Below, piece after piece: positions 17,832 to 25,768 of a stretch of DNA of 64,000 bases. Both the position numbers and the translations under genes were made by a program. The stretch is taken from the NCBI GenBank assembly GCA_964199315.1, contig OZ116703.1, forward strand, positions 310,001 to 374,000, written 5' to 3'. This DNA is from Orbicella franksi (taxonomy: Eukaryota). Each line of letters opens with the position of its first letter. Position 1 is the stretch's first letter. The notes beneath the pieces are model-generated. The model did not search any database and was not told the origin of the DNA. It saw nothing but the letters and a program-made list of their open reading frames with translations.

Positions 17832-19492
17832 TAAGTCATTAGATGGAACAATTGAAAATGCCCGTGGGGTGGTTCCCTCTCAGTGCACCAGAAATGATCC
17901 CTCACAACTGTTCTTAGAACAACGTGAGATTAAACAAATATGAGCAATTTGCAAATATGAACTCGAGCCTTCGTACGAAGGAAAACAAAAACGAAAACAA
18001 AAACACCGTTCAATAGCCACGCCATCTTTAAATGAGCAATGCGCAATTGATCGGCCTTTATCGTTAACGAGAATTTCCAAAGCTAGGTTCGGAGGTGCTT
18101 CGCGACGGTTTGCGATGTTTTTGAACATTTCCCAAGCCTTCCGAAAGCCTTTCAGTCGATGGTCAACTTTTCCTCAGTAAAATGTAACGAGGCTCTTTGT
18201 TGGAGTGTGGTTCTTACGGTTAGTGGCCGATAGGTTGGCTATTTTACCGCCAACGGTAAATTACTTCTCATGCGGCTCACAGAAATCTTAAGGTGGATCA
18301 CATCTGTTTCTCAAAGTTTTCAGTGCTCAATTAATTAATATCTCCAAATTGTATTAAAAAAATTCCCGTAAACCCTTCTCGCCCACTTTCAAGCAAGTTT
18401 TTTTTCGCAACTCATTCTTTCTAATGCTCACGACCAGCCCCTCCCCTCCACTCAACTCCCCTCGCTACCCCGTAAAAAAATAAACAGTCCCTAAACTCTT
18501 AAATAAACAAGTCTGAAGAAAGTTAAGTTCCAAAGAAGCCTCAGAATTGAAAACAAATGGTCAATGGCAATATTCAAACATAGCTGTAATATAATATAAA
18601 AATCTCAGATCAGATCGGAGGGGATAGACTGGATAATCTGTGAGTGAAACATTCCTCGACCCTGGCGAGAGATGAAAAATACTCTTCGGGATGGGGAGTG
18701 ATAGCATTGTCTTCTCCCACATTTCGCGATTTCAAATCGTGTTGACGATTTCAGTGCGGAAAAGATAAGAGACTACTTTTAATATTTCCTAAATATTACA
18801 TAAACAACGCGGATGAAAATTCAAAGCACTTTATTCTACACATTATAAACTTCAATCTATTGGACTGTGGGAATTTTGGACCTATTTCTAGTGCTGGCTT
18901 AAGGCAGCTTTATTACATATTTACATCTGAATGAGACTATATTGATGATTGATCCTGCCAGTACCCGGATGAACACCAAGTTTATTTGCTAGTGTTCATA
19001 TCATCACCTCTCCTTGAATAATAATGACAGGAGCTTCGATAAATCAGCACTTTCAGCTTTTACTGAAGTAGCTTGTTATGACCAGAATTTGTTCATATCC
19101 TGGACTTTAAAACTCAAAACATACCAATAACTTCTTGTGAAAGAATTTTCAGGTTAGCTTATACAGTACCGTCTTCCACACTACAGCATTTTATTAATTA
19201 TCTTACGCTCTTTGAAATTTAAGTTGTATTTTTCTTCACGGGCAATTTGGTCTGGGTTCATATAATTTTAAAAACGGTAGCACGCAAAATCAAACTATCT
19301 TTCAGGATTTGTTTAAAGTTTGCTACAAAGCTCTTTACCGCGTAATCAACTAAAATAGTAAATGATCTAAATCTCAAATAACCCGTATTATTTCATCCTT
19401 AGGATTTTAAATTCGTTCTTAAATTGTTTCGTTTACTTTTTAGTGGCATTGAACTTAGGATGATATAACTGCCACACCTGATCATTGAGGTC

Positions 19493-22400
19493 TTATTGCG
19501 GATGAACAGAATTCGACTCCAGTCCATTTTGATCGAACACAGCTCGGTTACTCGTCACAGATTGCATCCCCATTAAGTTGCCCTGGTCGGCATTACTGAC
19601 TGGTGTTTGTTGAACCATTTCTCCGCTGTCGATGCGCTCTCTTGTTCCCTTGACAACGCCCGAAACTCCTGAGAAATCTTCGTCATCCACCATCTTGTGT
19701 GCCTCTTTAATCAACTCGCCCTTTTCAATCTGCTGCGTCGTTTGCTTGGCACGGCCGGACACACTTGAAAAATCTTCCTCGTCAACCATTTTAGGCGCGT
19801 GTTTCATTAATTCTCCTTTTTCTATTTGCTGAGTTGTTTGTTTTGTGACTCCTTGAGTCACACCAAAGTCCTCAGTTTCAACCATCTTCGGTGCTTGTTT
19901 GATGAGAGCACCCGACTCAATTTCTCGAGTGGTTTCCTGGGTACGGCCATGAACTGCTGTGAAATCTTCATCTGAAATGGTTCTTTTGGTTTCTATATGA
20001 GGCGCACCTTCCTTCTCGTAGCTTGACTTCACCGCTAGGGCTACACCGCGGGCAGCTTCCAGATCCTCCCGCTCGCTATCCATGGTTCGTCTTCTCGGAC
20101 CTTGGTTCTGGGCTGCTTCCTGGAACTGTTTCAGTTGCTCCTTGGTTGATCCAGGTGTCACAATAGGTTCCTCCCGCTCCACAGTCTTCTGGTCTTCAAA
20201 TTCTCCCTTTTCGAACCGACTTCTGGTTGCCAAAGCCTTGCCAGGGTTAAGAGCCTCGTCCTCGACTTGTGATTTCTCATAGCCTTTGGCAGCAGCTGCT
20301 TTTAGTGCTTCTTTAGTTGCGTGAGCAACGCCAGATGGAGGAAGTTCTTCCTTCCAAGAATCCTGAATATTTGACTCGGCGTGAATAACTTTATCCTGCT
20401 CAAACATTTGCCTGACCCCACGAGTGCTGCCGGGGGGCGGAAGGGCATCTTCCTCGTCCTGAGACTGATTCTTTCGTGATGAAACCTCCACGCTCTGCAT
20501 GTACATCGCTGTCCGGGCTTTAGCCTCGCCTTTGTCTGGTTCATAACTCAAGCGCCTTTGTGCCTTGCCTTCATCGTCGTTTCTTTGCTCAAATCTACGC
20601 CGCACGGAAGACGCAGCACCGGCTGAAGGCATTTCCTCGGAGTTGTTCGTCTCGCGTACGTGCCTATCTTCGGCGCGGATAACTTGACCAGATTCGATGC
20701 TTGCACGTGTTTTAGATGCAATTCCTGTGGCAGGTAAGTATTCCTCTTCTTCATCTTCCTTCTTGCTATCTACGTTGCGCGCCGTTCCTTTCTCGAATGC
20801 TTCTCTGTTCGAGGCGGCTATTCCACCTTGGATCTCATCAAGGCCCTCAAGTTCTCGCTGCTGTGAAGGAGTTTTTGAAGCTTGGTTTTCTTGGTACCTC
20901 TTCATACTTGCTTTAGTGACACCAGACAGTATTTGCAAATCAACCGGCGTTTCTTTTTCCGCTTCTTGAGGCTGAGATTCAAAAAGGTCCTTAGCTCGTC
21001 TCGCACTTCCACTTTTTGGTAGTTCTTCCTCTGCAATCTTTCCCCTTTCACGTTCCAGCTCCCGCTCCCTTTGAAGGTAGGAAAGACGGAGGGCACTTCA
21101 AGTAAGTTACACGAAATATGATTTGACTAAAGGAAAACTTAGACAACACATTTTTCAACAGTGATTGGGGGAATTTACATGTAATAATCATTTAAATTGA
21201 TTTTTCTACTGCTTAATTTATTCCTAAGGAAAGAGAGAGAGAAAGATTAAATGTAGAAAATGACAGCAAATGGCAGGAGCTCAAAACTCACTAATTTTCC
21301 ACAAATAATCACGTTTCTGAACGTGTTGACACTGATGGAAAGTGAAAAAATCAACTTTTTTACGTAAGTTCACTAAGCTTTGCTCCGATAATCCGGCAAT
21401 GAGTTTTTCAACCAATACTTCAGATATTACAGAAGTCTACATCCTGTTTGCCAGACAGTTGCCGGCTTTATTCGCCAAAACTTGCATAATAACCGCATCA
21501 AATCGACAAAATGTACGCCCAAAGGCGAGGCGTATTCGCAGTCAAAACTTAAATTCGAGGAAAAGAATCATACTCGAAGATTTTTATCGTCGGTGTAAGT
21601 GCAGCGACAATCGACGCGACAGTGGAGTTGAGTAGTGTTCTGTCATACGTATTATAAACATTTCTCAACCAAGAGTTCTATCCTTGGTTTAATTAAGAAA
21701 AGAGCCAAAAAATTGAAAAAGATGCTTTCATTTTTCACTTTAATACACAATGCTCTTCTGTTATATGAAAGAAACAGATTCTATCCCTTTAGGCCTGACG
21801 ATGGTTCGTTTGTAGCGAGAAGTTTCTACATTGTCGCTTTTTATTAAAGACGCGTTACCGAATTTGAGCTTTGTACTATTAAGCGACCACAGATACAGTA
21901 GAAGACGGATTATCGCTCGAGAAGACCAAAAACTGGTTTGCAACTACATCAAAAGCAACTGGCAGTAACACATACCTCAGCAGTGAAGCGAAATTAACCG
22001 GTTGATTAGAATACTCAACTGAAATCACTCTAGCAGGCGCGACGTGGTGGTGAATTCTAATGAACTACGATAGCAGCATTTGGCCACCTTGACTTTCGTA
22101 TCGCTTTAAGTGATAGCCAGCAAAACAACAATAAATCAACCAATACCATCACGCCATTCATAAAACAGCTTATTAAGGCACGACTTAATGGCAAAGTGCT
22201 TTCCAGTCTTTCCTCGCAGTTCGCAACAAAGGGTAAATGAAAGATTAAAGAAATACTGAACTAAAGGAAGCAGGTGACGGGAGATAATGTAATAAAGTTA
22301 TCAATGAAACACCACGCGAGATCCACCGTGTAATGCTCGACATTGTATCCCGGCCCTTTCGTTTTGTTCTTTGTATATTCCAGTGTTTCACGCCGTTGTT

Positions 22401-24562
22401 TGGCGAGTTTTCAACCATACAATAAAATGTCCTAATGACTTACACATGGAAGACTTATTAATAAAAAAATTCCCGCTTTGCGGGAATATCTTTTAAGATT
22501 TTTTGTTAAAAAATAAACTTGTCGTTCCAAATCAAAGAAATGGAAAATGGCCACTCAAGAATCTAGTTGTTGATTTACTGCCTGGTAAGTGTGTTCCTTC
22601 CTAATCCACCTCTTACAGTTCCGTAGTAATTCCTGGAGACCTGCGATTTTTCCCATCGCCTTTGTTGGCATTCGCCCCCACTGGCTGTCACGCTACAATT
22701 TCAAAGCGTGACAGGTTTCCATTCCGAGAACTCTTTTCCTCTCCTCACTGAAATCGTTCTATAATGTACTAAACGGGAATTTTCTTGACTGTTTAACTTT
22801 AAGACAAAACGTATGTTATTCTTCTCTACAAAAACATATAAATTTCAATTACAGTTCAACATATTTTCTTAACAATTATTATTATTTGGAGCTAAATTGA
22901 CAGTCGATAAACCTTCCGATTTTGCGGTTCTTAGGAGTTTTGGCCGTAGAAAAGCCATTTAAACAACCATGTTCAGATATTGAGGGCTGAAAACGTTCTG
23001 GACGTGTTTTACAGCGGTGAAAGGACTCCTCAGTTCGAAAAATATAGAAAGCTGGGCTTGTTACTGACAAACTTGCAAGGCTTGTATGAACTAAAGCTGG
23101 GTTTCGGAGACAAGTCCTATTTATATATGGAGACTGTGAAGTGACAAGATCCCTCATCTTCCCATGACAGATGACCTCAACGATTTGAAAATAACATGCT
23201 ATACTGTTATCTCCAGTATATTGCCTCGGCTTGTCTATGTGACAATTCTACTTTGGAGATCAAGATTAAAACTGTGTTACAGAAAACGTGCGATACTGTA
23301 AAATTTAAAAAAAATCGTTCGATAATGTTGGACATGACGCCTTTTCTTTCATCAGAAATCTTAAGAATTCCGACCTTTCACCGACACTTGGCAAAATATC
23401 TGTGCGATTCAAGATGTTTCCTCTTTTGACATCTATCGCTTGAAGAGAGAAGAGGATTTTGAAAGACTAACAAACATTTTTCATCTTCCTTCCCATATGC
23501 TACCCCAAATTACCATATTTGCTTAATTTTGACATGAGATTCATTCAAGTGCTTGCTTCGTCTCGACCTTCGATAGTAGTGTTCTCAGAACAAAGCAAGC
23601 TGTGGTAATCAGATGTTAGCGTTATTCATCGAAATATCGTAGACCCAGATAAATCAGCTGGGCGCGAGAGTTTTTATTGGCTGTGATCCATGTCTGTGTT
23701 ATTGCGTGACGATTCTCCGCGCGTAAATTAACATCTGTCAAAACTCAAGAAAGTCAGCTTTTTCCTATGAAGGTAAAGGTCATTTTTGTTGTAAGAACAC
23801 CGCGATATAATTTTACGACGTGTGCTTCAGTATAAAGTTCCAGAACCTTCTCAGCCAGTAGCCTTGGCAAGTTTTTGGGTCGTTTACTTACAAAGTTGTC
23901 ACAAAAACCACGTTGTTTGGCAGTATATATGACACAGTCGTCCAAACATTTTCCTAGTCTGTTTGCACAGAAGACATATTTCTGCATCCAGTTTGGGCCA
24001 TAGTAAACACGTACAAATACAGTGAAAGCCAGGATAATTAGCTTAATGTATATAATTCCAGTTAAGAAAAGCTATAAACAAGATCCTCGCCATCTCAATC
24101 GGTTGTTTTAGGGACACGACTTAATGTATGAAGTTCCCGACAAGGACTAAATTTAACTCTATAAACAAAAGCACAAAAGTTACCGATTTAGGCAATATCC
24201 AATCGACTAAACATCGACGCAAATGAGATAGCCATAGAAATATAACAAACTGCAGTAATATTCAGTTCTGAAGAGAAATTGTTCATGATAAGAATGGACG
24301 ATCGCTCAAACAAACTTGTAGTGCGGTCAGCATTTTATTATGTCAACATCACAGGCATCAATTTGCAAATTTTACCACTGATACCTCAGAAAGATCGCGA
24401 TGTTTCGGTGGAACCGAATAACATTTCACCGTACCTTCTTTCGCGTTCAATCTCTTCTTGATCGACTTCTTCCCAATAACTCGCACTCCTTTCTACATCC
24501 TCTCCATCACGGAGTACGCTTCCCTCCTCTGACAACTCTGCATCACCGTTGACTGGATCCAT
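19493..24562 (-). CDS. Two-exon acidic/charged protein with ~16 Xin-register repeats (putative actin-binding), 567 aa
   Basis: Exon 1 24562-24435 (MDPVNGDAELSEE...EIERER, donor AG|GTACGG, phase 2). Exon 2 21068-19493 (acceptor ctttcctaccttcaaag|G, phase 2). 1704 nt, open frame. Repeated G-x8-[FYIL]-[EQD] motif. Confidence 0.75.
19590..19900 (-). repeat. Coding tandem repeat, 96-bp (32-aa) unit, ~3-4 copies
   Basis: APKMVETEDFGVTQGVTKQTTQQIEKGELMKH / APKMVDEEDFSSVSGRAKQTTQQIEKGELIKE / AHKMVDDEDFSGVSGVVKGTRERIDSGEMVQQ. Confidence 0.85.
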
Positions 24563-25768
24563 AATTTTTTTCTCACAGCTAGATTGAGACCGTCTGACTC
24601 GTGCAGTGCTGATCCGAGTTAAAATGCCAAGAACGTCAAGGCTCTTATGCTGCAGTGCCTATACAAACACGCCCAGATAAAAGCTGACACGCATACTTGA
24701 AGAATGCTTTGTTGTTGATGATCCGCTTGCCTGATCTAGCCAATAGGAACGCTCAGATATGTAACAGCCGATTTCCTTACACTGGCTTGTTTTGGTCAAG
24801 TAGGACGTAGAAAATACGACACAAGCGACATGATGTCATTTCAAGTCAAGTTTTCTTTTGTGATTTCTAAATCTAGATCAAGTTAATTGCCACGCTAGCC
24901 TCGAAATGAATGTAAGAAGAGAAGTATTCATAGCAATCTAAAGAATCTAGTTTCTTTGTCTTAAAACTTTCTTCGGAACCCAAACATTGCCAAGGCAAAC
25001 AGATCAGCAGAGTCAATTTATTCATTGACAATTATGAACATGAAATCTACGGGATTTAAGCCAGGAAGTCTTTCTTTAGCTAGGAATGAGAACGACGTTA
25101 TGCTTTGGACCTTCATATTCTGTCATGTTTTTCTCCGCTTATATTAGGCAGCAACTCTGGTAAAATCCAAGGTCACACGCTTACAATACCAACTATGCTT
25201 GTCACGCAAACATGTCCTTTAAATTTGATCGATTAGTTGTCTTCGTATTTTAGCTCGACTAAAAATATTGTCCTTTTCTGGGCATTGTTTAATTCTAAGA
25301 TCAGCGACCGCAGCAGCTTGCTACGAGGTAACAAAAATATGTAAACTGTTTACCGACCAAGAGAGGCATGTTGCCACAATTTTCAACAACCACAAAAGAC
25401 TAAGCAAGGTATTAAGTGACGCTGCGATGAAAACAAAACTCGCTAAAGGAGTTTCGTGTAAAAGCTTTCGCTTTATCCCAAGGCGATAAGTTTAAAATAT
25501 CTGGCTTAAGTACCTTGGACATAGAAGCAGCAGGCTTCCAGGGAAAATGAATAAACTAATGGTCATTGACGGGTTAAACGTCTATATGAAAGAACCGAGA
25601 AAAATTCCAACTTGGTGCCAACTGGTACATGTTTATCAGTGATAAGATGTCTGCAGTGTTATAGCTCTAAGGTTTCTTCTCCTGAACGTCACAGCTGACC
25701 AGAGTTAAGTCAAATCTGATCTGCAGGCCTGCAATTTTTTAATAATTTATTCTTTGATTCAGTATTTA

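Follow-up and report, generated by a model that had tools for sequence, protein, structure and literature searches.

In a 64,000-nt stretch of the genome of the coral Orbicella franksi (GenBank assembly GCA_964199315.1, contig OZ116703.1, positions 310,001 to 374,000 of the forward strand; hereafter, the window) we analysed a minus-strand gene that begins with an ATG at position 24562 and encodes, in two exons with a coding sequence of 1704 nt, a protein of 567 amino acids. The gene is real, expressed and hexacoral-wide, and its product is a tandem array of short repeats with no LIM domain. We favour the interpretation, which we hold to be somewhat better than an even bet, that this protein is a multivalent binder of the sides of actin filaments (F-actin), a LIM-less variant of the Xin/EPLIN kind and a paralogue of a cnidarian EPLIN-class gene. 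The coordinates of the gene and of its repeats are collected in Table 1.

The original prediction had joined a missed 128-nt first exon to a long open frame in order to obtain the 567-residue product, and the transcripts bear this out. The joint between positions 24435 and 21068 (mapped at 21067/24434, with a cut of +1) was found in RNA contigs from four runs belonging to four studies. Read on the plus strand, its ends are CT..AC, hence GT..AG for the minus-strand gene, with the donor GT at 24434-24433 and the acceptor AG at 21070-21069. Both exons are spanned by two RNA contigs, of 1926 nt and 2427 nt, ending at 24620 and 24670 respectively, and the peptide encoded by the first exon (SASYWEEVDQEE...ERER) is common to three transcript-derived coral orthologues. 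The RNA contigs of the window gene contained no further exons, LIM exon included, and Pfam searches of the coral protein, its orthologues and its relatives returned only noise, in agreement with the earlier claim that the product has no LIM or other globular domain.

Fifteen copies of the repeat fit the pattern G-x8-[FYILM]-[EQDKM] at a spacing of 29-35 amino acids (about 32), and a sixteenth, QSVTSNRAVFD, has no G. With the strict pattern G-x8-[FYIL]-[EQD] we counted 13 copies, compared with 1.17 ± 1.05 (maximum 6) in 5000 shuffled sequences. Sixteen repeats had been announced from the sequence, and all 16 quoted strings are indeed present, but the number that obeys the motif is therefore 13 or 15, depending on its stringency. 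The regular spacing was confirmed, as was the stretch that precedes the motif G, which consists of acidic residues followed by L or F and then P. No tandem repeat was found at the gene at the DNA level, so the copies are old and diverged.

An alignment of 146 coral and sea anemone units, anchored on the G, yielded the consensus [IV]-[DE]-[DE]-E-[DE]-[LF]-x-P-x-x-G1-[VIL]-A3-[KRS]-x-[TQ]6-[RK]7-x-x-[FIY]10-E11-x-G13; in units from sea anemones, and in coral ones near the C terminus, A-P-K-K-[VTM] comes next. Position 2 is V, I or S, positions 8-9 are variable and position 13 is Gly; position 3 is Ala (77%), Thr (17%) or Val (6%), and position 6 is Thr in 42% and Val in 19% of the units. Coral units carry F (34%), I (33%) or Y (26%) at position 10 and E (69%) at position 11, while those of sea anemones have F in 79% and E in 86% at the same two positions. 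The positions that vary least across 14 coral orthologues are G1, A3, T6, F10, E11 and G13. AlphaFold2, run on the coral alignment, gave a low-confidence, non-globular chain (mean predicted local distance difference test score, pLDDT, 47.5; predicted template-modelling score, pTM, 0.16), in which the fraction of helix was 0.53-0.93 at unit positions 2-11, compared with 0.2-0.4 outside them. Each unit is predicted to be a G-capped helix of about ten residues, with flexible acidic linkers between successive units. The protein is acidic (isoelectric point 4.9; 117 D+E against 83 K+R, a net charge of about -34) and contains no Cys.

To place the protein among its relatives, a profile of the coral sequences was searched against a library of 1.84 billion representative proteins. 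Close orthologues, with 64-95% identity, came from stony corals only. Beyond them, the profile retrieved orthologues in sea anemones, LOC5520918 of Nematostella (E 1.9e-106) and a protein of Actinia tenebrosa (E 7e-78), each with at least 20 such units in a strict 32-residue period and no LIM domain. The expectation that the protein would be annotated only as uncharacterised holds for Oculina patagonica, whose close orthologue is a hypothetical protein, but not for Actinia, whose copy was automatically named XIRP2-like by NCBI; a literature search on cnidarian Xin or LOC5520918 found no paper describing the coral or anemone protein. Outside Cnidaria, the coral profile matched five stretches of a 950-residue crinoid LIM protein (E 4e-6), the 90% cluster of which includes one member named LIMA1-like by NCBI. 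The repeat region of this crinoid protein in turn retrieved LIM proteins of starfish and acorn worms, and also very long LIM-less proteins. When cnidarian and ambulacrarian units were aligned with each other, hhalign gave a probability of 97.3% (E 2.4e-11), with a score of 33.9 against 6.7 ± 1.8 for column-shuffled controls. The assignment of the ambulacrarian LIM proteins to the EPLIN class rests on the NCBI name and the Pfam LIM hit. A search of sequences from the PDB with the coral profile found nothing, and a search with the Actinia protein returned sea anemones only.

In the 497-Mb coral assembly, single-sequence searches found no close paralogue of the window gene. A profile of the unit, on the other hand, matched two loci only: the window gene and a 540-residue frame on chromosome 10 (G000:C10:27289384-27291003), first found with the cnidarian unit hidden Markov model (HMM). 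This frame contains eight units of the form [DE]x[ILV]D[LI]-S-G-[RK]-A-K-S-H-[KR]-x-x-F-E, and its start, EGKIAADERPRQGYASSSKSLFEKKAQEA, is collinear with RGKIAEEELPKSGSARRAKDLFESQPQEA of the window gene (shared GKIA..E.P..G...K.LFE; BLASTP E 3e-6 over 231 amino acids). LIM exons lie 5.7 kb downstream of it on the same strand (G000:C10:27278976-27283674); they share 51-74% identity with the LIM domains that the ambulacrarian LIM proteins carry, and KPHFKQLFKAKGNYDEGFG comes after them. When the crinoid protein was used as a single query on the coral genome, nothing but LIM exons came up. The EPLIN class is defined by a LIM domain plus a 22-residue Eplin motif, and comprises LIMA1, XIRP2 and LIMD2, with one member in Nematostella (Koch et al., PMC3305314). 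In the coral exons the LIM domain is likewise followed by the Eplin motif, which is the signature of the class, and the region G000:C10:27278976-27292583 is probably a coral EPLIN-class gene of the LIMA1/XIRP2 type, with two LIM exons and the Eplin motif. Coding-like charged open frames with further ..RFE and ..KFE motifs occupy the interval that separates the repeat exon from the LIM exons.

The window protein has neither a LIM domain nor an Eplin motif, and the EPLIN-class LIM exons of the coral lie on another chromosome. Its unit is nevertheless common to LIM-bearing members of the class, as judged from the crinoid match, the hhalign comparison and the chromosome-10 alignment. We propose that the window gene is, by descent, a LIM-less paralogue of a cnidarian EPLIN-class (LIMA1/XIRP2) gene that has the same unit. 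If the chromosome-10 exons form one gene, cnidarians would hold a LIM-bearing and a LIM-less repeat protein, in parallel to the vertebrate pair of LIM-bearing XIRP2 and LIM-less XIRP1.

Other proteins with similar periods came up in these searches. Three proteins of the bdelloid rotifer Didymodactylos carnosus (P0036, P0037 and P0047) matched the coral profile with E of about 1e-5; they have 8-10 units with a period of 31-34 residues and the form G-[AMIL]-[AT]-S-[ET]-[KR]-[KR]-x-[KR]-F-E-[KRH]-G-[ED]-F, and no Pfam hits were obtained in P0036 and P0037. The unit therefore appears to be present in a protostome too. Three LIM-less ENA/JGI proteins of 1500-1650 residues (P0057, P0059 and P0062) contain about 22 bipartite units of some 67 residues, GxVAENEPVRRSDVV plus RGITKNLRAQWMTKGSEEF; these units have homologues in the repeat region of the ambulacrarian LIM proteins, among which one copy bears the name LIMA1-like. 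Pfam matches of these three proteins to PSP94 (28.1 bits against a threshold of 22) and CIDE-N (26.1 against 23.5) look spurious, as no single stretch passed. A JGI/Logan protein of 1086 residues, P0029, was matched by the coral profile with E 1e-6, probably through a coincidence of its period and of where its G stands; it contains about 14 copies of a different 32-residue repeat, HGINTAGAIRLQDPVRVTQKMNTINQEHYTNV, and has a weak match to the minor capsid protein P2 (DUF5899).

Is the coral unit a Xin repeat? The published consensus of the latter is GDV(K/Q/R/S)XX(R/K/T)WLFET(Q/R/K/T)PLD (PMC2478706), and the distance from G to F is the same in the coral unit, so that the identity of register claimed at the outset was correct. 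The Xin repeats of XIRP1 and XIRP2 are 15-28 short motifs arranged in tandem, 30-40 residues apart, in a G-x8-F-E register, and the coral array is alike in all these respects; both kinds of unit also have a basic residue at position 7, a small or aliphatic one at position 3 and an acidic-hydrophobic stretch before the G. The register G1...[RKT]7...F10-E11, looked for in at least three tandem copies within 16 residues each, occurs in 15 copies in the coral protein. For a quantitative comparison we took eight short Xin units, of which six are canonical and two degenerate, from Figure S1 of PMC2478706. Seven of the eight scored 5-12 bits with the cnidarian unit HMM, aligned G on G and FE on FE, above essentially all shuffles. 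When shuffling left G, F and E in place, the summed score of the Xin units was 49.9 compared with -11.2 ± 9.4, and the likeness therefore exceeds the three anchor residues. The alignment of cnidarian with Xin units by hhalign gave a probability of 90.5% (P 1.3e-6), with a score of 20.1 against 5.7 ± 1.5 (maximum 11.8) for column-shuffled Xin units. Two XIRP1 clusters were on top among the named clusters in a protein-language-model search (0.76 and 0.75), a result that we take as a lead and not as evidence.

Coral units differ from Xin repeats in that position 2 is hydrophobic and position 13 is G, and they are missing the Xin hallmarks D2-V3, W8-L9 and T12-x-P14-L15-D16, of which repeat 1 alone keeps something (L9, S12, Q13 and P14). 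The whole protein also differs from XIRP in having only 567 residues and no beta-catenin, filamin or Mena/VASP regions. We do not file the coral unit as a Xin repeat; we describe it as a Xin-like variant that belongs with the EPLIN-class repeats.

A structural frame for such units has been provided by the structure of ITPKA on F-actin, which defined a short helical motif, VxxLxxxFE, common to ITPKA and Lifeact (Paraschiakos et al., 2026, PMC13364712). This Lifeact-type motif (SFM) sits in the cleft of actin subdomains 1 and 3 (SD1/SD3), touching the D-loop of the neighbouring subunit, and single motifs bind with affinities of 2-12 uM. Supplementary Table 3 of the same work lists as such motifs eight XIRP1 Xin repeats (VQATSRKFE, VQCMRWIFE, VRAARWLFE and others), several from XIRP2, and residues 194-202 of LIMA1, LNRLKMMFE. 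Proteins with this motif present a short helix in a disordered context with Phe-Glu at motif positions P8-P9, and the coral unit is alike: its P8 is F, I or Y, its P9 is E, and in the AlphaFold2 model helix is predicted at positions 2-11 of most repeats within a disordered region. The N-terminal LNRLKMMFE(KGE) of LIMA1/EPLIN, in particular, shares with the coral unit the form ..[KR]xxFExG, although the window gene has no LIM domain, no Eplin motif and many more copies than vertebrate LIMA1. The coral array also departs from the proteins of that list in being a long regular tandem instead of one or a few copies, and in having Ala or Thr at P1 instead of Val or Leu.

According to the interpretation that we favour, the protein would be a cytosolic, disordered chain of tandem units of about 32 residues, [DE]3-4-[LF]-x-P-x-x-G-[VIL]-A-x-x-T-[RK]-x-x-[FIY]-E-x-G, in which each core from G1 to E11 may form a short amphipathic helix that has the conserved G as its cap and stops at the second G. 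This helix would dock in the hydrophobic SD1/SD3 cleft of a filament subunit, as do those of Xin, the N-terminal motif of LIMA1 and Lifeact/ITPKA, with F10 and E11 as anchors. Since the other anchor positions are occupied by Ala and Thr, each copy alone would bind weakly and the array would therefore act through avidity, which fits the report that three Xin repeats suffice for actin binding (PMC2478706). With 15-16 copies, about one per actin subunit, the array could hold avidly to the sides of filaments and stabilise, measure or bundle them. In nebulin, a repeat of 35 residues spans the 5.5-nm rise of an actin subunit, and a coral unit of 32 residues, made up of a helix of about 1.6 nm and some 20 flexible residues, could span it as well, so we infer that repeats and subunits would be matched roughly one to one along about 85 nm. 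Direct support exists for the gene model, its expression, the repeats, the predicted disorder and helices, the family links and the similarity to Xin profiles; the actin binding, stoichiometry and cellular role of the coral protein are what we would deduce from them. Of the original prediction, the observation stands and the interpretation is supported in part; the setting in cnidarian muscle or hair bundles that it put forward is pure conjecture. A hexacoral protein made almost exclusively of Xin-like helices would offer a simple natural model of how weak helices add up to avid filament binding, and since it is small, Cys-free and repeat-only, expressing and shortening it for binding and cryo-electron microscopy studies should be straightforward.

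We probed the docking in silico with residues 200-245 of the protein encoded by exon 2, which contain repeat 7, and a 376-residue metazoan-type actin from a metagenome contig, in monomeric form; this actin is 97% identical over its last 253 residues to the coral's own actin exon, the coral actin gene having introns. The complex scored 0.50, 0.50 and 0.47, compared with 0.02 for the best of three controls and 0.00 when actin was swapped for another protein. The pLDDT of the partner was at least 46, at least 54% of the contacts were common between runs, and the outcome was rated as weak support. The predictions were made with ESMFold2 without alignments (interface pTM, ipTM*, 0.49-0.52; ipSAE 0.47-0.50), whereas the published pipeline uses another tool and an ipTM of at least 0.6. 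We consider that the result raises the odds of actin binding a little, no more.

Several observations weigh against our interpretation, and some of them can be read in favour of a different one, namely that this is a disordered repeat protein whose helices serve another partner, or a charged spacer or scaffold, with a superficial likeness to Xin and Lifeact and no binding to actin. No curated family recognises the coral protein: Pfam Xin (PF08043) did not match it or 13 orthologues at E up to 10, nor the Nematostella, Actinia and crinoid relatives at E up to 1, and a six-frame scan of the whole coral genome with PF08043 found nothing at or above the cut-off of 20 bits, the best hit (18 bits) being away from the window gene. 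An HMM built from the eight Xin units gave the coral protein -2.4 bits, within the range of its shuffles, although with the same HMM Actinia scored 16.3 bits (reached by none of 300 shuffles) and Nematostella 6.8 bits, both significant; profile similarity to Xin is thus upheld by hhalign and the cnidarian unit HMM, but for the coral protein not by PF08043 or by the Xin HMM. In the full library, the coral profile did not reach vertebrate XIRP or LIMA1. The single gene made up of the chromosome-10 repeat exon and the LIM exons is putative. The hydrophobic residues that the Lifeact-type motif has at P1 (V/L/I) and P4 (L) are replaced by small or polar ones, Ala and mostly Thr, the hydrophobic residue of the coral unit standing one position earlier than in VxxLxxxFE, although the published list tolerates T at P4, as in the XIRP1 repeat VQATSRKFE (PMC13364712). 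Repeats 12-15 have Ile in the place of Phe and polar faces of T and Q, and the acidity of the protein would be unusual for a side-binder of F-actin, itself acidic. As for the complex, in the calibration of the tool the passes at or below 0.60 comprised five of 78 solved complexes and all four mismatched pairs that passed, so that a score in this range is wrong more frequently than it is right if no good prior backs it, and the pass may also reflect memory of solved peptide-actin complexes. Finally, motifs of G, F and E are short and easily arise, and a de novo origin has been argued for motifs of this kind (PMC13364712). Nevertheless, the unit is common to EPLIN-class proteins, members of which bind and bundle actin, the likeness to Xin goes past the G, F and E anchors, the docking signal was specific to actin and the positions of the motif are the best conserved ones, so we regard a partner other than actin, or a mere spacer, as rather unlikely.

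The use of monomeric actin in the complex test bears on another alternative, in which the protein would be a tandem binder of G-actin of the WH2/beta-thymosin kind that sequesters or nucleates actin, as Spire and Cordon-bleu do, instead of decorating filaments. The tandem WH2 domains of those proteins and beta-thymosins have a similar period, WH2 occupies the same SD1/SD3 cleft (PMC13364712), and the 32-residue period, amphipathic helix and basic patch of the C-terminal units (APKKV/KPKKL in sea anemones, IEKGELIKEAPKMV in coral repeats 13-14) recall WH2-LKKV. However, no Pfam WH2 or thymosin profile matched the coral protein or its orthologues at E up to 10, the unit has no LL..I hydrophobic face and no canonical LKKV, repeats 1-11 are without the basic patch, and the relatives Xin and LIMA1 bind filaments. 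We therefore rate monomer binding as very improbable. The simple repeats of nebulin are also similar, in their period of about 32-35 residues, suited to one repeat per actin subunit, and in their elongated, non-globular nature, but they are basic where the coral protein is acidic, and have an SDxxYK motif that it does not; the nebulin Pfam profile found no match in the coral protein or its orthologues at E up to 10.

The origin of the array is a separate matter. Xin repeats were described as a vertebrate invention linked to the chambered heart (PMC2478706), and no motif-positive cnidarian orthologues were reported for the proteins traced in the 2026 study of Lifeact-type motifs (PMC13364712). 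The window gene is at odds with the published opinion that repeats of the Xin type start with vertebrates, and hints at arrays that predate them. We propose, tentatively and as something clearly short of an even chance, that Xin-like arrays of the Lifeact type were already carried by an EPLIN-class gene in the common ancestor of cnidarians and bilaterians, the LIM-bearing and LIM-less cnidarian forms mirroring XIRP2 and XIRP1. If true, this would move the origin of such repeats back to early animals, and the Xin repeat, instead of having arisen as a novelty of vertebrates or of the heart, as was suggested in 2008, would be a refined form of a multivalent actin-binding repeat of ancient origin. 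It is somewhat less likely than not, though a slightly stronger possibility than that proposal, that the repeats are homologous between Cnidaria and invertebrate EPLIN-class proteins while the likeness to vertebrate Xin is convergent, in which case Xin would still be a vertebrate invention. The match between ambulacrarian and Xin units, with a score of 14.5 against a control maximum of 14.3, is marginal, residues specific to Xin are absent from the coral units, no Xin was found outside vertebrates in PMC2478706, and de novo origins have been reported for short motifs (PMC13364712), all of which would suit convergence. Homology with Xin is suggested, on the contrary, by the membership of XIRP2 itself in the EPLIN class (PMC3305314), by the position of a coral G-x8-F-E tandem array next to an EPLIN-class LIM domain, with a similar array in the ambulacrarian LIM proteins, and by degenerate Xin copies such as GDVQATSRKFEEGSF, the pattern of which hardly differs from that of the cnidarian unit.

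Table 1. Features of the window gene and cores of its repeats, in window coordinates.
Feature	Position	Strand	Remarks
5' untranslated region	24563..24670	-	transcript contigs end at 24620 and 24670; in-frame stop 99 nt upstream of ATG
Exon 1, coding, 128 nt: MDPVNGDAELSEEGSVLRDGEDVERSASYWEEVDQEEIERER + 2 nt of next codon	24435..24562	-	kept in orthologues P0012, P0014, P0015
Sole intron, 3366 nt, GT..AG	21069..24434	-	joint in RNA contigs
Exon 2, coding, including stop; 524 amino acids + 1 nt of split codon; contains all repeats	19493..21068	-	
3' untranslated region	19200..19492	-	extends past 19200; 322 nt more in one transcript contig
Repeat 1 core GSARRAKDLFESQ	20972..21010	-	most Xin-like copy (LFESQP); best domain of canonical-Xin HMM is here, in register
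Repeat 2 core GVTKASMKRYQEN	20885..20923	-	
Repeat 3 core GIAASNREAFEKG	20786..20824	-	
Repeat 4 core GIASKTRASIESG	20687..20725	-	
Repeat 5 core GAASSVRRRFEQR	20582..20620	-	
Repeat 6 core GEAKARTAMYMQS	20492..20530	-	degenerate, Y-M instead of F-E
Repeat 7 core GSTRGVRQMFEQD	20393..20431	-	nearly invariant in corals; fragment of actin complex test
Repeat 8 core GVAHATKEALKAA	20294..20332	-	degenerate, L-K
Repeat 9 core GKALATRSRFEKG	20204..20242	-	cf. XIRP1 repeat VQATSRKFE
Repeat 10 core GSTKEQLKQFQEA	20114..20152	-	
Repeat 11 core GVALAVKSSYEKE	20009..20047	-	
Repeat 12 core GRTQETTREIESG	19910..19948	-	
Repeat 13 core GVTKQTTQQIEKG	19814..19852	-	
Repeat 14 core GRAKQTTQQIEKG	19718..19756	-	
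Repeat 15 core GVVKGTRERIDSG	19622..19660	-	
Degenerate 16th copy QSVTSNRAVFDQN	19526..19564	-	no G

Two minor features of the RNA contigs concern the gene as tabulated. In two of the four RNA runs, unspliced contigs run through the whole 3.4-kb intron (21069-24434) at about one quarter to one third of the exon depth; these may derive from pre-mRNA or from genomic DNA in those libraries. The contigs also differ from the window by small indels (4, 17 and 2 nt), which correspond to other alleles.

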